NCBI RefSeq assembly: GCF_018977255.1
Contig: NW_024704749.1
Span: 16,864,001 to 16,928,000, forward strand
Direction of reading: 5' to 3'
DNA from: Callorhinchus milii
Taxonomy: Eukaryota
DNA: 64,000 nt
Below, one piece after another: positions 46,340-59,153 of this stretch (positions are counted from its first letter, which is position 1; the number at the start of each line of letters is the position of its first letter). The notes beneath the pieces are model-generated. The model saw only the letters and a list, made by a program, of their open reading frames with translations, did no database searches and had not been told where the DNA came from. The translations under genes were made by a program, and so were the position numbers.

Positions 46340-46387
46340 TTAAGCGTGTGGCTGCAGAACATCAAGAAGTCCCAGAGGTAAAGCGAT
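46340..46387 (-). CDS. Minus-strand gene last coding exon ([15 protein letters not shown])
   Basis: ggtttctccag acceptor, TAA at 46342-46340, followed by UTR-like sequence. Confidence 0.62.
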   Translation of the reverse strand: MALPLGLLDVLQPHA

Positions 46388-49300
46388 CTGGAGAAACCAA
46401 CAACACACAGAAATGAAGGAGCAAGTAAACTCACACACATTAGAGCGTAGTGGAGTCATGTAAATCAGGTTAAGGGACGTGCCGGTTCAAAGCCCTGATA
46501 ATGACATTGTGTTTATTCCCAGTACAGTATGTTTTAGCTGATTCTAGAGTTACATAATAATAATCGTTGCATTTCATATAGCGCCTTATTACATCTTCGA
46601 GAAGTCCCAAAGTGCTTCACAGAATATGCTGTAAAGTGAATCGACCGTATATTTTGTGGGCGAATTGCAGCAGCCAATTGCGCACAGCAGCGTCCCACAA
46701 ACAATCGTGGATTGAGTGACCAAATTATTAGCAGTAGTTTTTTGAAGGAATTATTCAGGAAAGGAGGGGAGAACCCCCCCTTCTCCCCCAAGGAAATATA
46801 ATAGCAAATGATTCCTTTCTGTGAACTATCCATAATGGATTTACCTGCTGTTCCGTTGGATGGTTTTCGGATCCTGTTGTCTGTGACGATGTGAATCCAG
46901 ACAAGGTCAGGCACTGCAACTGGCTTCGAGCCCCTGATAATAACAAGGATTTTTCACATAAAACTGTCAGCGAAGCCATTCGACATCTCTAACTAAGGTC
47001 AGAGCGATTCTTAAAACAAAGGTTGGCTGAAATAATGTCCTGACCATGAACAGACTGCGACGGAATAAAATGGGATAAGAGAAATGAGGACCTAATTGAA
47101 GGAAACCAGCACAGCAGGATAATCCCAGCCAGCAGTGCTAAAACGCCTTGAGACGTCCTGTGTTGCACATCAAATGCAAGAATTATTATCATTACCACAA
47201 CCCACTGACCTACGGGGATGTGAGGAGGCTGCTCACCAGTGCTGTGGACTGGAACCTGACCCTCAACAGCCGTGACTGGCATTAGCTGCTGTGTCTGGGG
47301 AAGAGCAGACAGTCCCGGCTGCTTCAGGAGCTGCTCCGCTCCACCAGGGCACTGGATCTTCATCTTCAACGTTTCCACTCGAGGGCGAAGGTGGGCCAGA
47401 GCCTCAGTGTGCGTCAGGGCAGAAGCCTGGACTTGCGGAATCTGTCCCTGGCTAAGGACCAGGTCTTCAGGAGGCCCCGAGTCTAACAGCTGCCCTTGCT
47501 CCCTGCACTCCTGCCGTTCCTTCTTCTGCTGGATTTGAAAGGCCTGGAGTAACAGAAATGACGAGCTTTTAAAACACAAACTTATTAAACTGAAAGATAA
47601 GCCGCTTCAGGGCAAAGCTGGAGATACTTATTAAGGCCACAAAGGTCACAAGTTTGACTGACACTTGTCAGGGACATAGTACATTGCACTGAGATACCAC
47701 CATTCAAAAAGGAAATCAATAGCCACTAACAAGAGACTATAATAATCCTTGCATTTGATATAGCGCTGTTCACATCTTCTAAACGTCTCAAAGCGCTTCA
47801 CAGAATATACTATAAAGTGAATTGACTGTATATTTGTTGGTGAAACGCGGCAGCCAATTGCACACAGCAGTGTCCCACAAACAGTGGTGAACTAAAGCGA
47901 TATAAAAAAAATTCTTGAGGGATTATTATCAGGTGTGTGGAGTAATGTAACTTGCCCAAGGTTTTGCCCTTCCAGGAATCGAACCCAGATTTCTCGCTTG
48001 TGAGATGAGTGCTCTAACCACTGAGCTACAGGACTCCACTACAGGACTAGCGCTACAAATTACAGCACTGGCTCAATCCCAATTTTTAACATGTTAAAGA
48101 TTTGCATTAAACCGTATATTTTAAGATATTTAGTTAACTGTCAGTGAACCAGACCGCTGGCTATGAAGTATTTGGGATGTATTCCACGTTTCTCTGTGGG
48201 TACCTGAAGAATTAGCTGACTGGCTGAGGTACATATACTGGTGCCTCTTCTGTTACTCAGAACTCCCACAGGATTTGACTGATAAAATGAGAAGCAAAGA
48301 AAAAAAAAATTCAAATCTATTAAAAAGCTAAAATATTATTTGCAATTTCTCACAACACAGCTCAGTTCAACTGGCAGCGATAATAAAGTCAACCTTTTTT
48401 CCACAACGTAAATCAAAATTTTCAAGCTCACTCTAAAGTATTAGAACGCTTCACTCTTTATGTAGCTTCCCACTTGCCTGGCGTTAAAAAAGAGTATGTG
48501 TGTTATAAAGACAGCTGTGTGAAGGCAACCTTCTCCACGTCGAGCTGCTAGAACATTTCATTCATTCAGAGTTTGTTCTGTGACAGACCAGCCATTGCTT
48601 GTGCCATTGGCAGCTGTGTCAGGCTCATTGTAACCTGAGAGCATGACGCAGTGAGTTGGGGCAGATTCTTAGCAATGAAGGACTATTTTTCGCCCCACAA
48701 AAACCAATTCACTTTGCAGTATATTCTGTAAAGCGCTTTGAAACATCTCAAAGACATGATAAGGCGCTGTATCAAATGCAAGGATTATTATTTATTATTG
48801 TTTGGTTATGTCTCAATAAGGGTTTTATTCGAGGTCTGACAAAGAAGTTAAAAAGTATAGCGAGACCTGGGTGTGAGTTGTAATTAAGAGACTCAGGCCA
48901 TTAGAATCTGATCAACAAGCTTCCCCAAAGGCCTAGTAGGTCAAAGGCACCATTAGGCCACTAGCTTTGAAGCTACTGATCTCAACAAGAGCTAAATCCC
49001 TGGGGTAGAGCAGAAAAATAAGACTATGTGTGTGTGCATGTCAGATACGTCTAGTATTAGGCTGGGCTGTAATACCTACCAAAACTCAGTACGTCTTATA
49101 GTTAAACTGTTAGTTCCACTCTCCCCACAACCCACACTTACCGATAATTCCTGGTTCAGAGAAATGGGTACGAGCTGGGCTGGCACTTCCTGAATAGTGA
49201 CTTGTCCAGGGTCCAGAAAGGGGCTATACTGTCCGCTGACATTCCCGCAGTTGTTTGCCGAGTTAGTGGGAATATTGCACAATAAAGCAGCCTGGGGCTG

Positions 49301-52300
49301 AGGCCTGATGGTCCCAGCCACACTGCAGGGCAGGTCTAACGTTTGAACAAGGATCTAAAATGTTGAAAGAACAAAACATTAGTTTAATAAGAGCTAAACT
49401 GGAGCACAGCGGAAGCAAACTGGGGCTGAGAAAATCCAAAATGTATTTTGCCATTTCCTTTGCTAAGGATTCATTCTGAGGTACACTTTTAGGTACAGTA
49501 CAGCTGCCTGGACTATTTAAGAAACAAATCTGGGGCTATTTCAACAGTGAGGGGATGGCTATCATGGCTAAGTCTGACTTCATATGCACTGCTTACAGCA
49601 GTTACCCAATAGCGCAGTGTCGCATGAGCTTAGTCTTAAGACTGTTTATAATCTGCACTGACTTGTCAGAAATGCCGACCTTCAGATGAGAAGTTAAATC
49701 AAGGTCCCGTCTGCCTGTTCAGGTGGAAGTCAAAAGGCCTTGGAAATTATTTCAAAAAAGAGGTGTTTCTCCCGGTGTTCTGGCCAACAATCCTCCAGAT
49801 AAGTTAGTCATTCACTTCATGGCTCTTTGTGGGAGCAAATTAGCAGTTTCATCTGCCGACAAATTCACGTCTCGAAACACACAGCAATTAATAGCCTACA
49901 GAGCACTTTTGAGATGTCTGAATATTACTGAATAATAGGTGGCTGGATCGAATGCAAATTCTTATAATAAAACCCAACTGTAAAACCCAAAGTGACCTGA
50001 ATATCACTCTGTTGGAGGATATCCTGGATGAGCCCAATGGTGGTTGGCACAGTGGACAGGAGCTGGGAATGGCTGGCATTCTGCATTATCCATCCCATCA
50101 CCGGACCCTCTTTGGACACACTTTGCTGCTGTAGTGCCTGTGGTTTGGATGACAGTCCCATCAATTGCTGTGGGACTATCACGCCGTTTGCTGGACACAC
50201 AGAAGAAGGCTCTTGGAGGCTGGTAACTTGAGGTGAACCCATTGCCTGGAGGTGCTGAGCGGTTTGCTGGGTTGCGACACTTCGTTGTGGAGACACTGGT
50301 GAGAAATCTGAAACGTTCTGCATCATAAAAATAAAATGAAAAGGATTCATTAGGAAACAAACCTAGTCCCTGTTTACCTGTTCAGGTAGACTTTATAGTT
50401 CCCAATTGAACTATTCGAAAAAGGAAGAGAGTTTCTCATTGTGTAATGACCAGTAATCCACCCAGATAATAATAGTAACAGATGACTGTTTGTAGGACAT
50501 AGCTGTGCACAAATTTGCTGCCAGGTTTGCCTACAAACACATAGTCACTACATCTTACAGTACAACTCCGTGACCTGCTTTGAGATGCTTCGACATAGGT
50601 GCTACTTCAATTAGCTTTACGTGCCTGAGAATGTGATTTAAAAAGTATTAAGAGAATATCCGGCTCTGAAGATAGAATTCAAGCCAGAGAGAGCAGGTTT
50701 TAGAATATAAATGCTCAGCCCGCACGTGTGCTCAGTGCCACTCGTTCTACATGAGCAACCCTTGACCTGAACCAAACCAGGGCATTAACGAGTGAAGGAG
50801 AACTGAATGCCACGTCCACCCAGTGTTGAGAGTCAAACGCTGAGTGAGCTGTGTAGATATGGTGCCATCTAATGGCAGACACCAGATATTGACACAAAAC
50901 GTACAAGGCACCCAACCCTGTTACAACACAACCAAAAGAGGGAGAGCAGCTGGGAAAACTCAGGAGGTCAGGTAGCATCGATCGAGGAAAGGAAAGTGAG
51001 TCAACGTTTCGGGTCCACGACCCTTTCCTTCATAGATGCTGCCTGACCGGCTGAGTTTTCCCAGCTGCTCTCTGTGTTTTGTTTCAGATTCCAGCAGCTG
51101 CAGTATTTTGTGTTCTGTTACAACACTGGTTGTTATCGCAAACTGAACACGCGCCGTACATTTCTGTACGTCGGAAGAGGTAGAGTAGCAGTCAACGGTA
51201 AATTGACAACCCATAAATTGGCCATTGTTTTACTACAGAAAGTTGGCTGGACAGCGCTAGAGACCAAGTGTACTCGAAACACTAGACAATAGCACTATAA
51301 ACTATAAGCTTTGGTGAATGAGTTAGCACCAATTTAGAATTGAGGGTTGAATGATCTCCTCGGCTGTACAGCGCCTTGGGACGTCCTCCCGACGTGAAAG
51401 GCGCTCTATAAATGGAATCTTGTTGTTGTTGTTGTAGGCTGTCATTTCTATGCATCTATGGGAAGGTTACACTCAGTACCTGGGGCTTGTAGCCATGTTG
51501 TTGCTGCTGTTGTTGCTGCAGAATCTGAACTTGTTTTTTCAACACCTCAATTTGTTGCTGTTGCACCTGGATCTGAACCTGGTTTGGAGAAGAAGTACAT
51601 TAGCTATCAAGAGTGGGACTGTCCTGCATAGCCTCAACATATTAAAGGCAAAGTATTGTGGAGTCCTGGAGCATAGTGGTTAGCCCACTCACCTCACAAG
51701 TGAGAGGTTTAATTGCCAGACGGGGCAAAACCCTAGGCAAGTTTCTTACTTCACACGTCTCTGTTTACCTAGCAGTAAGTAGGAACGGTTGGCGGATCGC
51801 TTTCTGGGGGTTATAATCCCTCCAAAAAAACATGGTCACTCAATCCACAACTGCTGTGTACAACTGGCTGCCATATTATGCGCACAAAATACAGTCAATA
51901 ATTATTATTATTATTAATAAAGAGAGAACTTACGGTGGCTGGCAAAGAGGACAGCTGAACACTTGGGACAGACATTGTGATGCTTTCTGAGGCTGCTGCA
52001 GCTACACTGGCAGAACCTCGAGTAGAGCTTGGGGCATTTGTTGGGTTCCTGGTGCCCAGTCGCTCAACACCAACCTTTTTCTGAGTCCTCGCCTTCCCCT
52101 GGAAACCAAAGGAAAATCAAATAAAGAAGCTCATATGAGTCATGTGGAGAGGCCACTGCAGACTTTTTCACAAAGAACAAAAAAAAGAGAATACTCATGG
52201 AAGATTTGAAGTATTAAAGATCCTAAAAGGAATAGGTAAAGTCTAATAACCCCCCCAAAATTAATAATCCTTGCTTTTGATATAGCGCCTTATCATGCCT

Positions 52301-55300
52301 TCGAGACGTCTCAAAGCACTTCACAGAACATATTGTAAAGTGAATTGACCGTATATTTTGTGGGTGAAGTTGCGCACAGCAGTGTCCCACACACGGTCAT
52401 GGATTGACTGATCACGTTCTTCTTTATTTGTTTATTTTTAAAGAACGTGTTAAAGCCCCCAAACTTGGAGAGCACAAAAAGCAACATCGTTGGGGTTTTG
52501 TCTACCTTCCACCACCTTTTGAGCCCGTGGGGAGGAGGCTCTCTCTCGCCTCCGGTTCTTTTCATCTGCTCGCTGACCCGGCCAATGGTGCTATGGCTGC
52601 AGCCTGTGACCCAGCTGATGAACTTGTAGCAGTTTGATCTCAAGCCACCTGGAGCAGTGTGAGAAAGACAGCGTTCAGACTGCAAGCATTTACCTCGCAG
52701 GTTACACCGAGGATCCGTTCCACAACCGGAGGCAACCACAGCAGCGGGTGGAAGCACTCTTGCAAACCGGTTTTCTGGAGTTCTTAAATTGCCTTCCACA
52801 AACTTAAATCTGAAGAGAAAAGCCTTAGGGATAAGATTAGCCTGAAGTTTGGGCTTCTGGTTTCTTCCCGCCACCCCTACCCCACCACCCCACATGGTTT
52901 CCGCGTGTGTCAGACACCCGGCTGACCAAAGCTAAAAAATACAAGTGCAGTGCAGTAAATGCAGTGCAGGATTTACACAAGTGCTGAGAGATGGCTGCAC
53001 TGGTAGACACTCACCTGAAGGAGTAAGCATTTCAGCCAGCGTCCTGCGGGCTTCAGCCTGTCCCTTAGAAGCACGTTCCCTCCAGAGGTCAAGCAAGCGA
53101 GCGTGAGTGCGTGCCATCTGGAAAACAAGTCAGGGTTCTTCAAACACTGCTGCTCTGCTGTATCTCACCCCGTTCCACCCACAGATCCACCTTTTCAAAC
53201 TGCACCTCCCGTTTACAACACAACAAATGACACTTGCCTAGCGCCCTTCACGTCGGAAAGACGTCCCATTGACCCCTGCGGCTACTTACCAAAACGCAGT
53301 TATCCACACAGCACTTCTCGGTCATAAGTTCTGCAATTGGCTTCAGGAGCCCCAGAGCTCCTTTCCTTTGCTCCTCTCCACTCGCACCCCCTTCTGTAGA
53401 GAATTCAGCAAAGGTGGGTGAGATTTAAAGCACTGCGGTGGAAAGGCTTCCCTTAAAGTTTTATCTTTGTGTCCGGTCCGTTACCTCGGGATCTGTTTTG
53501 AGCTTCTTATGCAGGAAGTTGTTGGAATACCCGAGGATCCGTTGCGTGGCTCTCTCGCACAGCTTCAGCTCGCTTCGCAACGTGCTGCGGTTCCTCAGGA
53601 CGAATTCTTCGAACGCCTTTGATTTGCGTTGACCGTTTCCCAGGCCGATGGACCTTCTGAAAAAAACAAGAGCATCAAATCGACAGCAAATGTCTGCTAA
53701 CTTACACATCTATTTCTTTGAAGAATACATCGAAAGTTGTCTGTTGTTATTTACTTTCCTTGGGGTTCATTAAAAAAAAACAATTCCGTCACTCGATCTA
53801 CGTCTGTTTGTGGAATGCTGCTGTGTGCAATTGGCTGTTGCGTTTGGCCCACAACATATACAGTCACTACACTTTACAATATATTCTGTGAAGCGCTTTG
53901 AGACGTCTCAACTACATGAAACATCTCAGACATTTCGAATACTGAGAGCAAGGGACCCGGCAGCTTCTTAATAAGTCAATAGTGAGCGGAGATACTAACC
54001 AACAGACAAATTCAAGCAAAAAAAAATCCTGAATCGTATAAATGGGGGGGAAACAATCTTTAAAACAAATACATTTTATACAAATTATCCAACTTTTAAC
54101 ATAAACTGGATTTCTTACTTTCTTGATTTTCCCACTTGCACTTGGCTTTCACTGTAACATTTCAATGAACTAAGTTGCTTTGCTTCTTTCAGCAGCTGCA
54201 GAAGACTGAGAGCTCGATGGCGACACTGGCTCAGATCTTCCCCTGAAATCAAGGCCAGGGTGAGGTGTTAGAACCAACGGCTTAGGTGATAAATAACCAG
54301 GGGTAGTGGTGCCTGGGGTCAGAGAAGCTGCTGAAATACTAAACTGAGTGACTCTGCGTGCTGTGGAGAGGATTCTCTGACGTTCATGTCAACGTCATTC
54401 TAGAGATACTAGAGCGTTTGAGCTTACAAACGCTCACACAAATTGTGCAGATGACCTTTCATATTGCCCACAAAGTCACACTGTCACTCCGCTTTACAGC
54501 ATATCCTGTTAATCGTCCTCCTGACGTGAAAGGCGCTGTACATAGAAACAGGAGTAGGCCATTCAGCCCCTCGAGCCAGTTTTGCCATCCTATAAGATCA
54601 TGGCTGAGCTGTACCTCAAGTCCAATTATCCGGCCTTGCCCTGTGTCACTTAATAACCTGACCTAGCAAGTATCTATCTACCGCAGTCTTGAAGATGTGA
54701 ATGGATCCAGGATCCACAGCCTTTTGGGGGAGAGAGAGTTCTAGATATACCAAATGTAAGGATGATTATGTTTATAATAAAGGCACGTTACTTCAAAAGT
54801 CAAAATGCCCAGTCCCCTCACCGGGCCTCCTGATGTAGTTCTGCAGACACTGACACGGCTTCTTCACAAACAAAGGGCAGCACAGCTTCTCCGCATCTTG
54901 GTCACCCAGTAGGTGTGTCACGGCCGCTGTAAATTCCCGCAGCTCCTCCTCGTGCTTCTTGCGTGCGCTGGCTTCGACGTTTGTGCAAGGGGTGTGAGGG
55001 CGACGAGGTCTGTCAAACGCTAGACCTGAAGCAAGCAAAAGTCTTACACGGCTTCTCGTGGATTGGTCACAGTGAATTACAGGGAAAAAAAAGCACCCGT
55101 TAACAAGAACCGAACAGGTTGAGCACATAAAAATCCGTAAGAGTATCCTTGCTTAGCTTCATCATACTTTACTGGACTTCCATGTTAAAGTAAACCAATT
55201 TACTTAAAACTTCCTTGAAGAAAAGTAAAGGGATGCTGGTAGCAAATCTACAATTTGCTGTATCAAGTGCATCTGGCTCCACTTCCTGTCTGGCACAAAC

Positions 55301-57877
55301 CACCTCCTCCATACAAACGCAGAAAACCCCCCAGGGGCTGAAGGAAAGAGTCAGGCTACGGCTCAATCTGAAACAGGTTGCGGAAAACCCATCTCCTTGC
55401 TTCAGAGTATCCAAACCAAGCTGAGAATTCCATGCAGCTCACCTCCACATGGAGATCACAGAGACAGATTGTTGGCGTGGACTGCGCACTCTCTCCCTGG
55501 CTGGAGGGACGCATGCTGCTTACCTAATTCCGGGAAAGTATTCGGCGCAGATTGGCAAGGGCTTGAGGGGCTGTTGAACTTACCACATGCATTACATAGC
55601 GTTAGCACTCGTCCAGTCTTTGGGTCGTTCTTGCGGCGTGGTGACGGGCTATAGTTTGATGTCTTCAATCGATTGCCCCGCCGTCTAGGATCCGTAATGT
55701 AAGGGGATTTGCAGATATCGCAGCAAAACCTGGCTTCCTTTCTTCCCTCTAGAAGAAAAGTTTACAAATTCAGTCTGGCTTTAAAATTCCGTGCTTTGGA
55801 TTTTCAGTTGCAAAGTAATTGTTCCGGGCTGCCCGGTGGGTAAAGGCACTTCAGCACTTGGCTAGAAACACCTACGTTTAGCAGGTTTCAATTTCTAGTC
55901 TTTGCTCCATGTCCCCCACCCGGCCCTCCCCACCATCAGTGGTCGGGCCTTCAGCCTTTCTGCCCCCATACTTCAGAACTCCATCCCAGTCCCTTCGCCT
56001 CGCCTCCTCCCTTTCCCATTCAAGGCCTGTCTCAAGACCCTCCTCTCGATCGTGTCTTCGGTCACCCTCCTACCCCGACCCTCCCTGCTCTCGAACCCCT
56101 CTTGATCTCAACCCCCATCTCAGGTCCATCCTTGACTGTCCAGTCTTGGGTTGTCCTCCCGACGTGAAAGGCTCTGTGTAAATATAATTTGTTATTGTTG
56201 TTCAATTAACTGATTTCAGCCAGGCTGGCAAAAATTACAACTGGTCTGGGATGCTGAAGCCACTTGTAATATTGAGATCAGCTGAGATCAGGGAACTTAG
56301 TACAGACCAAGACTCAAACCTGTGACCCTGAAAGATTATCTGGCAACAATCCCCCAATTGGTGTTCAATGCCTTGCCTGATTTGGCTTTGGATGGACTGC
56401 ACTTCCACTTGCTCTTTTTTCTCCTGACTGGAGCTTCTTCCACTTCGGGTGAAAAGGACCGTTTTTTCCGCACTCTTCCACTCCTTCTTCGTTCAACCAC
56501 ATTACTGGACTCCTGATGAACCACCTCCTGTAAGCAAATGGATGAAGATATAACCAGGGTTTTAAACAACGGGTGGTAAGGTATTGAAACCCAATTGCTA
56601 CACGTGGCTCTGAATTGATGCGAGGTTCATATATCATTCAGTCATCTCTCCTTGACTATCTGTTTTCCATTCTTTTTACATTTTCAACTGCTAATATCGA
56701 CAATATCGTCTCGCACTCTGTTAGGTTATGTCAGCCAAGCTAAACTCGCCCTCGCCGCCACTGTCTTAAGGAGTAGAAAAAATCAAGACAGAATTTCTGC
56801 TCCTGATTACTATCCAGTGACTGAAAAGTGCAAGTGTGAGGACATATAGTGAGGAAACAGGATCGAGTCAAACAGCCTTCCAACATGAACAGTGGTCAAT
56901 ATGAGTGATTTCAGTGGAATGATAAAGGAATTTAAGGCAGATTCCGCAGACTAAGGGAGAAATTCGTGGGGGAAATAGTTTTACCCAAGTACAATAAAAA
57001 CTCACCACAGACACGTCGGTTAAATTCAGATTGAGTGATTCATTCGCTTTGCTCTGTTGTTGCCCAGGTCCGTCGACCACTGACACGAGTTTAATCTCCC
57101 TGCGGATCTGATCTGCATCTGCAGTAAATGTCAAGAAATGCAAAACAAGCTAAAATGTGCTGAAAGGGCACTAAGTGCCAAAGACACATGTACCCCCTTC
57201 TACTTGGGAGCATCTTGGGACATCCTCCCGACGTGAAAAGGTGCTACATAAATGCAATTTGTTGTTTGTTGTTGCTGCTGCTGTTGAATTCTGAGAAACA
57301 AATCAAATCAAATGAACGCTTGTTACTTTCCAGACACAGCCCATCTCAACACGAAATGATTAATTTACCGGGTTCTTCATCACTTAGCCGCTGCAGGACC
57401 ATTCAGTTCTTCCACTTTCAAATGCATAACATTTCGGCTCTGCATTTCCCTTTCTGCATCTCTCTCGATTTCTCTCTCTCTCTCTCTCTCTCCCGCTGTT
57501 TCTCTCCATTGCTCTTCCTCTCGCTGTTTTATCTATTTCTCATTACTCTCAAAATGAGTCACTTCAATCCCACGACTGTTGGACGGGGACGCCGCTGCGC
57601 GCAACTGGCTGCCGCGTTCCGCCCGCAAAAATAAACAGTCAGTTCGCTCGACAGTACATCCTGCGAAGCGCTTTGAGACGTCTCGAAAAGACGCCGTATC
57701 AAGTGCAAGCTTTATTGCTGCCCCTCTCTTTTCTTTCTCTCTCTCTCTCTCTCTCTCGCCGTCTCTCCATTTCTCTCTGCGTTCCTCTTTCTCGCTCTAT
57801 TTCTCTTTATTTATTCAGTTATTTATTTACTCACTCACTCATTCATTCATTCACTCTCAGGCTGTTGAACAGATGGG

Positions 57878-57909
<32 letters not shown>

Positions 57910-58100
57910 CTGGAACTACAATTCCCACAGTGCCCCGCGCGGGCCCCGCCCGGGGGGGAGAGGACAAGATGGCGTCGTGTGTCTCTCTCTCTATCCCTCC
58001 CTCAGCCCTGAGGGCCTCACACACACACACACACCGACCGCCGCCGCCGCCATCCTCCAGCCGCCGCCGCCGCCGACTCACCGCGGCTAAAGACTTCCAT
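46340..58100 (-). CDS. Uncharacterised ~824 aa putative nuclear zinc-finger protein: complement(join(46340..46387,47214..47543,49142..49354,49997..50317,51480..51578,51934..52098,52506..52648,53015..53117,53290..53393,53485..53656,54119..54242,54822..55025,55584..55748,56377..56527,57006..57118,58082..58100))
   Basis: 16 exons with polypyrimidine-AG acceptors and phase-matched donors (14 GT, one GC). Total 2474 nt, one base short of 825 codons; the shortfall is in exon 8. Contains [21 protein letters not shown]...LCNACGL and a Q-rich C-terminus. Confidence 0.82.
47214..47543 (-). CDS. Minus-strand gene exon 15, Q-rich ([12 protein letters not shown]...QPPHIP)
   Basis: ttactccag acceptor, ccc|gtaggt donor (competing donor 4 nt downstream); 330 nt open. 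Confidence 0.74.
47738..48040 (-). mobile_element. Full-length young tRNA-derived SINE with intact Pol III boxes
   Basis: Minus strand reads gtggagtcctgTAGCTCAGTGGttagagcac...gGGTTCGATTCCtgg, then body, L2-type hairpin and (ATT)n. Confidence 0.88.
49142..49354 (-). CDS. Minus-strand gene exon 14 ([10 protein letters not shown]...LNQELS)
   Basis: cattttag acceptor, tcg|gtaagt donor; 213 nt open. Confidence 0.76.
49997..50317 (-). CDS. Minus-strand gene exon 13, Q/S/P-rich ([11 protein letters not shown]...ILQQSDIQ)
   Basis: ttttatgatgcag acceptor, cag|gtcact donor (weak); 321 nt open. Confidence 0.72.
50942..51072. repeat. Palindromic element, ~50-bp imperfect inverted arms (Penelope-like remnant)
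   Basis: gagagcagctgggaaaactcaggaggtcaggtagcatcgat pairs with atagatgctgcctgaccggctgagttttcccagctgctctc. Confidence 0.75.
51480..51578 (-). CDS. Minus-strand gene exon 12, poly-Q/coiled-coil ([33 protein letters not shown])
   Basis: cttctccaaaccag acceptor, cag|gtactg donor; 99 nt; mixed CAG/CAA codons. Confidence 0.78.
51657..51916 (+). mobile_element. tRNA-SINE copy with longer central domain
   Basis: gtggagtcctg head as at 48040, extra ctctgtttacctagcagtaagtagg segment, (ATT)n end. Confidence 0.7.
51934..52098 (-). CDS. Minus-strand gene exon 11 ([10 protein letters not shown]...SSLPAT)
   Basis: ggtttccag acceptor, acc|gtaagt donor; 165 nt open. Confidence 0.78.
52506..52648 (-). CDS. 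Minus-strand gene exon 10 ([25 protein letters not shown]...[11 protein letters not shown])
   Basis: gctccag acceptor, aag|gtagac donor; 143 nt. Confidence 0.85.
53015..53117 (-). CDS. Minus-strand gene exon 9 ([34 protein letters not shown])
   Basis: gttttccag acceptor, cag|gtgagt donor; 103 nt. Confidence 0.87.
53290..53393 (-). CDS. Minus-strand gene exon 8 ([10 protein letters not shown] / [24 protein letters not shown]); apparent 1-nt deletion
   Basis: tctctacag acceptor, ttg|gtaagt donor; 104 nt between two phase-0 junctions. Confidence 0.72.
53485..53656 (-). CDS. Minus-strand gene exon 7 ([20 protein letters not shown]...[26 protein letters not shown])
   Basis: [18 protein letters not shown], gag|gtaacg donor; 172 nt. 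Confidence 0.88.
54119..54242 (-). CDS. Minus-strand gene exon 6 ([30 protein letters not shown]...GKSRK)
   Basis: gatttcag acceptor, aa|gtaaga donor; 124 nt. Confidence 0.85.
54541..54730 (-). mobile_element. CR1 LINE 3' end
   Basis: Minus strand ends ...ctcgaggggctgaatggcctactcctgtttctatg, the chondrichthyan CR1-type terminus; related pieces at ~27700-27840 (-) and ~28900-28990 (+). Confidence 0.72.
54822..55025 (-). CDS. Minus-strand gene exon 5 (GLAFDRPRR...[22 protein letters not shown])
   Basis: tgcttcag acceptor, ccg|gtgagg donor; 204 nt. Confidence 0.88.
55584..55748 (-). CDS. Minus-strand gene exon 4, atypical GATA-like zinc finger ([10 protein letters not shown]...LTLCNACG)
   Basis: ttttcttctag acceptor, tg|gtaagt donor; 165 nt. 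Confidence 0.88.
55900..56202 (+). mobile_element. L2 LINE 3' fragment
   Basis: [25 protein letters not shown] translation, tail cctcccgacgtgaaaggc and (TTG)n. Confidence 0.78.
56377..56527 (-). CDS. Minus-strand gene exon 3, basic NLS-like ([17 protein letters not shown]...RRKKSK)
   Basis: gcttacag acceptor, cag|gcaagg GC donor; 151 nt. Confidence 0.78.
57006..57118 (-). CDS. Minus-strand gene exon 2 ([17 protein letters not shown]...TDVSV)
   Basis: tttactgcag acceptor, gtg|gtgagt donor; 113 nt. Confidence 0.75.
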
Positions 58101-58660
58101 TCCGAGAGCAAGGTCAGGCCAGCTGCCCGAGCCGCAGACATTATTGTTAACGGCGAATGGATGACAAACGAACTCCTCCTCTTCCTCCGCCTCCTCCTCC
58201 GCGCCGTCGCCTCACCCTCTCCCCCCCCCGCCCCGCCCCCCGGCGGGTGACTGACGTGCGCTGGCCCCGCCCCCCTCTCGCCCGCTCTCTCTCTCGCTGA
58301 GCGAGACCACTGTGACGCCGGGGGATAGGGGAGGACGGTACCTCCCTTTTACAACTTGTGTTCAAAAAAAACCGTTCACCGTTAAAAGTTATCAAGACAC
58401 TGGTCAGAAGAGCTCAAGAGGGGGTCATTCGCGTGGCTGCTGCACATTTTGCAGTTAAAGGCAACGGAAATAACGCTCGAGTGTTTTGTTCTGTTTCCCC
58501 CCCTCCCCACCACCACGCACACGCGCACTGGGTTCTGGTACCTTGGACCGGACCAAGTGACGTTGACAGGCAGGCAGGCAGGCAGGGGGCGTCTTGCGCA
58601 GGCGCACCGTGAAACCGTGCCAATTTGAGGCGGGCCGCCGCCATCTTTGATAAAGGCACG
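57930..58660. promoter_or_regulatory. CpG-island promoter of the minus-strand gene
   Basis: Dense CpG and (GCC)n runs, GC boxes (ccccgccccc), CRE-like TGACGT near 58253, YY1-type CAAGATGGCG at 57965 and GCCGCCATCTTT at 58637. Confidence 0.8.
58082..58100 (-). CDS. Minus-strand gene coding exon 1 (MEVFSR)
   Basis: ATG GAA GTC TTT AGC CGC G|gtgagt inside the CpG island; phase 1 matches exon 2. Confidence 0.65.
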
Positions 58661-58965
58661 AGTGGGGGTCAGGGGCTGGAATGCTAAATGTTTAGAGCAG
58701 TGATTAAACACAGCAATAGTAAATGTGATATAATATTATTTGCATTTGAGGGAGCGCCTCGTCCCATGGGCGCGACGTCTCAAAGCGCTTCACGGAGTGA
58801 ATTAACTCTGCAAAGTGAATGGACTGATTTTTTTGGGGGTTGAAATAATAATTTTCATTAACACCACTACTACTACTACTACTACTACTAATAATAATGA
58901 TGATAAACGATGGCCACTTTGGTGGGCTTCCGTAGAGCGCCCGCTTGTGAAATGGGCGTCAACCC

Positions 58966-59153
58966 AAAACAATAATAAATTGGTCATTTTCAACCCACGA
59001 CTGTTTGTGGGACATTGCTGTGCGCAATTGGCTGCCGCGTTCGCCCACAAATATACAGTCAATTCACTTTACAGTGTGTTCTGTGAAGCGCTTTGGGACG
59101 TCCTCCCGACGTGAAAAGCGCTATATCAAATGCGAGGATTATTATTATTATTA
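58966..59153 (+). mobile_element. Young SINE copy, subfamily with L2-type loop
   Basis: Consensus body, gggacgtcctcccgacgtgaaaagcgct loop, (ATT)n. Confidence 0.85.

Follow-up and report, generated by a model that had tools for sequence, protein, structure and literature searches.

A stretch of 64,000 nucleotides from the genome of the chimaera Callorhinchus milii (NCBI RefSeq assembly GCF_018977255.1, contig NW_024704749.1, positions 16,864,001 to 16,928,000 of the forward strand; hereafter, the window) contains a multi-exon gene that spans positions 46340-58173 on the minus strand. The locus is LOC103183049, listed in RefSeq as an ‘uncharacterized protein’ with 17 coding exons and isoforms of 851-860 amino acids (aa). 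An unnamed animal protein family, present in Placozoa, Cnidaria and Bilateria, has this gene as its single orthologue in the chimaera. The architecture of the encoded protein points to a transcription regulator, in which a strongly conserved, cysteine-rich core would probably bind DNA.

An initial annotation, made from the letters of the window, had drawn the gene as a chain of 16 exons that codes for about 824 aa and starts in a CpG island. That the gene is real and divided into many exons is confirmed by spliced contigs from three studies and by the identity of its exon peptides to a known protein. The correctly framed peptides of exons 2-11, 13 and 16 were compared one by one with 115 proteins and are 100% identical to XP_007898483.1 (P0043), the 855-aa isoform X2 of LOC103183049 in Callorhinchus milii, which served as the reference protein. 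When XP_007898483.1 is mapped onto the window by exact match, all 17 coding exons are located, each flanked by ag and gt (or gc), and the stop codon falls at 46340-46342. The earlier exon number and protein length have to give way to those of RefSeq. The whole-protein analyses described below were run on public protein records, and not on window exons spliced together. The CpG island has held up. In 500-base windows over the promoter region (57750-58499), the GC content is 0.59-0.61, with a maximum of 0.614 in 58000-58499, and the observed/expected ratio of CpG is 0.93-0.98.

Fourteen sequencing runs, all from one organism and belonging to four studies, contain positions 52300-58200; none of them is recorded as RNA, and ten were guessed to be so. 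Four of these runs (X1, X2, X5 and X9, from three studies), whose RNA nature is likewise a guess, were aligned to this region in the form of Logan contigs. Minus-strand GT..AG joints were found at 57118>58082, 56526>57005 and 53656>54119 in all four runs, and at 54241>54821, 53117>53290 and 52645>53012 in three of the four. A GC..AG joint at 55748>56377, with the ends CT..GC, is also present in four out of four, and the donor of intron 3 (56371-56376) reads gcaagg. The junctions between exons 4 and 5 and between exons 7 and 8 were deduced from consecutive contig coordinates (run X2, run X1) and not from printed joints. A single 1652-base contig of run X2 extends from exon 1 through exon 10 and further. 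As the contigs are spliced, they represent RNA; the gene is expressed and spliced. Such contigs carry no information on expression level, strand or transcript ends. The junction check proposed in the initial annotation thus speaks for the model over exons 1-10, while exons 11-17 rest on the exact match to XP_007898483.1. The features of the locus are collected in Table 1.

Table 1. Features in the window, in the order of transcription for the gene; residues are those of XP_007898483.1, runs are the four aligned sequencing runs, HTH stands for helix-turn-helix, UTR for untranslated region and NLS for nuclear localisation signal
Feature	Position	Strand	Content and evidence
CpG-rich promoter region around exon 1	57750-58500		GC content and CpG observed/expected
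Exon 1	58082-58173	-	5' UTR, start codon 58100-58098, six codons plus one base (phase 1); contig reaches about 58173
Alternative first coding exon	57369-57402	-	11 codons and one further base; the peptide matches exactly at 57402-57370
Exon 2	57006-57118	-	Exact match to residues 8-44; joints in 4/4 runs
Exon 3	56377-56527	-	Residues 45-94; conserved basic NLS-like tract; followed by the GC-AG intron
Exon 4	55584-55748	-	Residues 96-149; putative C4 zinc finger, second half GATA-like; contig pieces
Exon 5	54822-55025	-	Residues 151-217; finger end, long helix, first Cys cluster C199/C207/C209; contig pieces
Exon 6	54119-54242	-	Long helix 221-242; joints on both sides (3/4 and 4/4 runs)
Exon 7	53485-53656	-	First predicted HTH, helices 272-288, 293-300 and 304-310; invariant C292 and H308
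Exon 8	53290-53393	-	Second Cys cluster C344/C345/C349; one base short at 53359/53360
Exon 9	53015-53117	-	Helices 348-382 of the second module; joints in 3/4 runs
Exon 10	52506-52648	-	Second predicted HTH, helices 393-400 and 404-417; invariant C392 and H426
Exon 11	51934-52098	-	Exact match to residues 434-488, ag/gt flanks; disordered tail begins
Exon 12	51480-51578	-	Exact match to residues 489-521; Q-rich predicted helix 487-515, possible coiled coil
Exon 13	49997-50317	-	Exact match to residues 522-628
Exon 14	49142-49354	-	Exact match to residues 629-699
Possible cassette exon	48204-48278	-	25 codons, phase 0-0, ag/gt flanks; candidate from sequence only
Exon 15	47210-47543	-	Exact match to residues 700-811
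Exon 16	46845-46933	-	Exact match to residues 814-840
Exon 17	46340-46387	-	Exact match to residues 841-855 (last 15 codons), then taa stop
Convergent neighbour, GPSM1/GPSM2-family gene	691-42165	+	Pfam TPR_1 and GoLoco (GoLoco E 5e-15 to 7e-12)

The anatomy of the protein was studied in an alignment (A1) of 60 of the 115 proteins, from which duplicate isoforms, fragments and evident fusions (P0006, P0108, P0113) were omitted. Fourteen Cys/His residues are invariant in all 60 members (for the exon 8 cysteines, in the 58 of 58 that have this exon), and all of them are encoded in window exons. They fall into three groups. The first is formed by C104, C107, C146 and C149, in the arrangement C104-x2-C107-x38-C146-x2-C149; the second by C199, C207, C209, C292 and H308; and the third by C344, C345, C349, C392 and H426. 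The basic NLS-like tract, the C4 finger, the Cys-rich and folded-looking core and the Q/S/P-rich tail that had been predicted from the letters are all found in the protein. In the basic tract of exon 3, R62 is nearly invariant in the family alignment. The core (residues 96-433) contains 5.3% Cys and 20.7% Lys plus Arg, and the tail (434-855) contains 16.6% Q, 10.0% S and 8.8% P.

The AlphaFold2 model, calculated with A1, gives residues 100-440 mostly a predicted local distance difference test score (pLDDT) above 90, and most of 445-855 a score below 50. It lays out the core as a two-strand-plus-helix finger, a long helical hairpin, a three-helix module (272-310), a helical bundle (348-417) and a helix (427-438). 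The spacer of the finger is partly of low confidence, with 116-123 below a pLDDT of 50. An exception in the tail is the helix 487-515, encoded by the Q-rich exon 12, with a pLDDT of about 82. The model of the Trichoplax protein has the same layout, including a comparable helix at 417-448. In each HTH module, the second helix is directly preceded by an invariant Cys and the third is followed by an invariant His, with a three-Cys cluster upstream of the module, and the third (‘recognition’) helices of both modules are among the best-conserved stretches. The invariant residues suggest three zinc sites: one in the finger, and one that may clamp each HTH module. An internal duplication of a ‘Cys cluster plus HTH’ unit was also considered and is not supported: when compared by hhalign, the two modules do not come out as repeats of each other (probability 0.85%, E 0.066), although their ligand patterns run parallel.

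The family is wide and old. With the 67-aa peptide of exon 5 alone, HMMER found 20 proteins at E<=1e-3 among 1.84 billion representatives, the best at 9.6e-23. Their named sources are a shark, bowfin, sturgeon, turtle, newt, amphioxus, Lingula and crickets, and all of these proteins are called ‘uncharacterized’ or ‘hypothetical’. When the core of the shark protein was used as the query, 91 matches were obtained, all at E<=2e-59, and 70 of the 91 rows carry an organism name. The matches cover 36-100% of the 356-aa query region, most of them at least 92%. At full length, the similarity is collinear through the finger, the first Cys cluster, the first HTH, the second Cys cluster and the second HTH. 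A profile search gave 145 proteins, and among the best 120 of them, the weakest has an E value of 3e-127.

The members come from all over the animal tree. Outside the bilaterians, they include Trichoplax, anthozoans, a scyphozoan and Hydra. Deuterostome invertebrates are represented by sea urchins, starfish, crinoids and amphioxus, and lophotrochozoans by gastropods, bivalves, a chiton, annelids, a nemertean and a brachiopod. Among the ecdysozoans, there are a priapulid, a horseshoe crab, a mite and ticks, along with insects, namely a termite, a cockroach, orthopterans, a stick insect, thrips, odonates and one sawfly. The vertebrate members are the chimaera, ten sharks, sturgeon, paddlefish, gar, bowfin, coelacanth, two salamanders and eight turtles. 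The survey of orthologues suggested by the initial annotation, thus, finds them in sharks, gar, coelacanth, amphioxus and turtles, in a family far older and wider than had first been guessed. Among the 70 named of the 91 matches and the best 120 of the 145, no named match comes from a mammal, bird, squamate, crocodilian, frog, teleost, lamprey or tunicate, or from a dipteran, lepidopteran, beetle, crustacean, nematode, flatworm, sponge or ctenophore. These absences were read from the lists of protein matches, with no genome-level search behind them; many familiar model animals appear to lack the family.

Conservation is concentrated in the core. Over 337 columns, the core of the Callorhinchus protein is 74-80% identical to that of seven sharks, 60-70% to bony vertebrates, 63% to Branchiostoma, 60-61% to anthozoans (Nematostella 61.4%), 56.7% to Trichoplax and 39-57% to ecdysozoans (Limulus 56.9%). 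Purifying selection on exons 4-10 had been named as a point to check. In the comparison with Heptranchias, identity is 84-93% for the core exons (89-93% for exons 7, 9 and 10) and 67% for exon 5, as compared with only 34-48% for the tail exons 11, 13 and 16. Purifying selection on the core is thereby shown at the protein level. A FastTree tree of the core was built from the 50 named rows of A1, the 10 unnamed rows being omitted. It contains one sequence per species and recovers the chondrichthyans (in which chimaera and sharks are sister lineages), the ray-finned fishes, the tetrapods plus coelacanth, the echinoderms, the insects and the anthozoans. Its deep branches are not resolved, and the cnidarians are placed beside the chordates.

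The gene had been taken for an unnamed one, and every named homologue is indeed ‘uncharacterized’, ‘hypothetical’ or the bearer of an automatic name that is driven by composition. UniProt automatically calls the Nematostella protein a ‘SANT domain-containing protein’, a label that was not reproduced with Pfam. Likewise, the names ‘SPT20 homolog’ (XP_042193598.1) and ‘KMT2D-like’ (a Heptranchias isoform) were assigned automatically, in both cases to a part or an isoform of a protein of the LOC103183049 family. The Pfam scan of the intact XP_007898483.1 contains no SPT20 or SET-related domain, and we infer that both names reflect the Q-rich tail. A literature search through 18 gene and protein identifiers of the family, which left supplementary tables and most subscription journals outside its reach, returned no paper, and the part of the topical literature listings that was available includes none on the LOC103183049 family. 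The expectation of undescribed biology is borne out as regards function; the gene model itself is already in RefSeq, and what lacks a description is the function alone. As far as these searches show, neither the family itself nor its breadth, conservation or domain appears to have been described.

Comparison with known families gave few leads. In Pfam, ten stop-free genomic pieces matched no family at E<=1, and nine exact exon peptides yielded chance-level rows only. For XP_007898483.1, the scan lists only Enterotoxin_ST (E 0.023) and GATA (E 0.051), both at chance level; zf-DNL is not among its rows, in agreement with the earlier remark that the protein does not resemble zf-DNL/DNLZ. NCBIfam showed nothing meaningful. 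A PDB sequence search with the A1 profile matched only Q-rich tails (TBP and others), along with GATA factor 18 at E 0.32, and exon 10 alone had chance matches (HIV Vpr, E 0.42). A word-indexed search that started from a stop-free piece of 119 aa around exon 5 produced 22 candidates, none of which scored; its length window excludes full-length relatives.

GATA is the only Pfam family that recurs in more than two of the members (41 of 60 at E<=1, the best at 7.6e-4). The GATA profile (PF00320) scored 13.4-16.3 bits in five of the eight homologues that were scanned singly, over about positions 19-32 of its 36; the cut-off of 26.8 bits was not reached, and the peptides of exons 4 and 5 alone gave no matches. 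The finger resembles that of the GATA factors in its four Cys, in a nearly invariant, GATA-like second half with the residues that follow, and in the modelled two short strands plus helix. In GATA factors, it is the second half of the finger that contacts DNA. It differs in that the profile match is partial and below threshold, and in its spacing; 38 residues lie between C107 and C146, whereas the Cys pairs of a GATA finger are separated by 17-18. The structural comparison with the GATA1 finger (PDB 3vd6_C) has a Z of 3.5, with a root-mean-square deviation (rmsd) of 1.6 over 36 aligned residues and 33% identity, and stands at rank 43 in its list.

The second HTH led to a different set of proteins. 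The Trp_repressor family (PF01371) was seen with exon 10 at 12.5 bits (E 0.16) and in one of the 60 members (E 0.069), below its threshold of 27 bits. In a VIA-align search of 48,161 chains, the best Z scores were 4.7 and 5.0, and a second look gave 5.3 for the putative TrpR 3frw_F (rmsd 2.4, 50 aligned, 36% identity); the second HTH scored 5.0 against 3g1c. The second HTH and the helix that precedes it superpose on the TrpR-like chains (3frw, 3g1c, and E. coli TrpR 6ejw and 1trr) at Z 4.7-5.3 and rmsd 2.2-3.0 over 48-52 aligned residues, with identities of up to 36%. Unlike the chimaera protein, these are small bacterial proteins; only about 50 of the 340 core residues are covered, all values are below thresholds (the tool advises caution under Z 8), and here the module has invariant Cys/His and is part of a multi-domain animal protein. 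The next chains, ParB/KorB, SETMAR, Mos1, Tc3, resolvase, CRP and sigma region 4, all align on the second HTH with Z 3.4-4.9.

The initial annotation had proposed a transcription regulator, and the architecture, as read from sequence and model, favours the same view. We consider it probable, without being strongly so, that the protein is a zinc-stabilised, sequence-specific DNA-binding transcription regulator, because a basic tract, a GATA-like finger, two HTH modules, a basic core, a Q-rich helix and a Q/S/P-rich tail fit this role better than the alternatives considered. The conserved basic tract would serve nuclear entry. The core of about 340 residues would bind DNA through the C4 finger, with its Cys pairs 38 residues apart, and through the two HTH modules, each probably clamped by its own zinc site made up of the three-Cys cluster, the Cys at the start of the second helix and the His after the third. 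Behind the core, the Q-rich helix may pair two molecules, while the long disordered tail would make contact with the transcription machinery. Zinc binding, DNA binding, dimerisation and a role in activation or repression are all inferred from this layout.

A bolder proposal goes further, and we hold it tentatively, at slightly less than an even chance. In it, the core would be an undescribed animal DNA-binding domain with three zinc sites, composed of a long-spaced GATA-like finger and two zinc-clamped HTH modules. The factor would go back to an ancestor shared by placozoans, cnidarians and bilaterians and would have stayed nearly unchanged for more than half a billion years. It would have disappeared independently from mammals, birds, teleosts, frogs, most holometabolous insects and nematodes. 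Regulated skipping of exon 8 would, moreover, switch off the second module.

Several observations weigh against the regulator reading. No Pfam family reaches its threshold in the window pieces, the exon peptides, the homologues or the 60 members. The structure prediction called for earlier gave a confident core fold, yet a Foldseek search of the PDB with both models returned no match at E<=0.001 (the best at E 0.43 and 0.86), and the ESM Atlas provided no usable look-alike for exon 5 or for the core of XP_007898483.1. All VIA-align Z scores are at or below 5.3, values which the tool rates as possibly a mere common helical arrangement, and the first module (about 160-320) received almost no rows and was, hence, barely tested. 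The zinc sites are predicted from invariance only. HTH folds occur in proteins other than transcription factors as well.

Other explanations were weighed. The core could be a very old domesticated transposase DNA-binding domain (Tc1/mariner, pogo or IS630) with a transposon-related or chromosome-structural task, for example, at repeats or centromeres. This proposal, which we regard as unlikely, concerns the origin and the target of the protein and is compatible with DNA binding. The second HTH does align with SETMAR (7s03, Z 4.3-4.5), Mos1 (3hos, 3.8), Tc3 (1tc3, 3.6), IstA (3.5) and the HTHs of Tn3 and serine recombinases (3.6-4.1), the range for the Tc1/mariner domains being 3.6-4.5, and the tandem three-helix modules resemble the bipartite DNA-binding domains of transposases. 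However, TrpR-like, ParB and CRP chains score equally or higher. In the 60 members, Pfam finds no transposase or catalytic domain; there is one gene per species, with vertical descent by clade and a tree that matches the major groups; and the gene is rich in introns and lies between host genes. The Cys clusters of the modules, and the missing repeat relation between them, also set the protein apart from Tc1/mariner. Such an origin is backed by a generic HTH likeness only and, if real, must predate the placozoan-cnidarian-bilaterian ancestor.

It could also be that the protein binds RNA or other proteins, for instance as a chromatin or cofactor scaffold, and that its zinc sites and helices are structural and do not read a DNA sequence. 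All the fold matches are weak, no DNA-binding family reaches its threshold, and disordered Q-rich tails are common in coactivators and RNA-binding proteins. We nevertheless find this rather improbable. The core is basic, the most GATA-like half of the finger is the nearly invariant one, both ‘recognition’ helices are among the top-conserved stretches, and among the solved chains, the closest are almost without exception DNA-binding domains.

If the regulator reading is true, an ancient family of animal DNA-binding regulators is missing from the catalogues, which rest largely on human, mouse, fly and worm. The domain has neither a Pfam model nor a solved relative. That the cores of the chimaera and sea anemone proteins are about 60% identical speaks for very strong functional constraint. 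The repeated losses, if true, would explain the lack of study and raise the question of what has replaced the protein. Workable species that retain the family are Nematostella, Hydra, sea urchins, amphioxus, salamanders, gar, and a cockroach or cricket.

Exon 8 needs separate mention. The initial model had been described as consistent in phase, and exon-by-exon translation does find the phase chain unbroken except at this exon, where the window is one base short and shifts the frame. The contigs of runs X1 and X2 both carry one extra base behind 53359, each being the sole contig of its run that covers the site; run X5 has only the last letters of a contig there, and run X9 has no coverage. Residue 328 of XP_007898483.1 falls between the two window pieces of the exon, which were handled as two pieces throughout, the base never being inserted into the window. 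With the extra base, exon 8 has 105 bases and is in phase 0-0. The missing base at 53359-53360 is probably an assembly error in a short run of G.

The newer RefSeq annotation replaces the gene with two partial proteins. XP_042193599.1 (P0116, 242 aa) loses collinearity after exon 5, and XP_042193598.1 (P0117, 516 aa), called ‘transcription factor SPT20 homolog’, equals residues 340-855 with one substitution, the same as in the window; this is residue 813, which is R in both and Q in XP_007898483.1. Since the annotation breaks at the missing base of the window, the window belongs to the newer assembly, and the split is best explained by the one-base gap. The current Callorhinchus annotation thus divides the gene and misnames one half of it, apparently owing to that gap. 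A pseudogene or annotation artefact without a full-length protein, as the short exon 8 and the two partial models might suggest, is very improbable indeed, as the spliced contigs of X1 and X2 hold the extra base as their sole form, the older RefSeq isoforms are intact at the site, no other stop or frame break occurs in the 17 exons, and the core is strongly constrained, as its identity to the seven sharks indicates.

The same exon may be skipped in other animals. Annotated isoform pairs of the coelacanth (Latimeria, P0120/P0060), the painted turtle (Chrysemys, P0134/P0069) and the green turtle (Chelonia, P0021/P0004) differ by exactly 35 residues, which is exon 8, so that skipping may be conserved across species, judging by the annotated sequences. 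If real, it would remove three proposed ligands of the third zinc site. The Callorhinchus contigs examined include the exon.

Some variation was also seen elsewhere in the gene. The coding part of exon 1 matches residues 1-6 exactly. An upstream ATG (58139-58141, minus strand) lies in this exon out of frame with the annotated start and may represent a short upstream or overlapping reading frame. The alternative first exon is used in RefSeq isoforms X1 and X3 (P0118, P0119) and in the newer 242-aa model, and has no junction among the contig joints listed for the four runs. Runs of GA/CA dinucleotide repeats, passed over as repetitive in the contig alignment, occupy 57720-58050, between it and exon 1. 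Isoform P0118 is 9 residues shorter in exon 15, which an upstream alternative donor near 47237 would fit. The peptide of the possible cassette exon is 67% identical over 21 aa to a tail segment of Pristiophorus (P0035) and 68% over 19 aa to one of Heptranchias (P0001), and is not present in the Callorhinchus isoforms examined. An open, protein-like stretch at 52700-52830 (minus strand) with splice-like flanks was rejected as an exon, since it is missing from all spliced contigs and is covered by no more than a single unspliced contig of low depth.

Downstream, the gene faces a convergent neighbour that had been identified as GPSM1. Its membership of the GPSM1/GPSM2 family and its convergent orientation stand; the match to PDB GPSM2 has an E value of 9e-49, and, as all PDB matches are GPSM2/Pins, GPSM1 and GPSM2 are not separable here. 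An abundant short interspersed repeat, copies of which fill the introns, was noted at about 46590-46720, 47790-47900, 52310-52400, 53790-53910, 57560-57700 and 58950-59110. A tRNA-Val-like element (47964-48035, minus strand) is located beside one such copy. Over the repeat copies, the contig depth rises to 1e4-1e5, as against tens over the exons.

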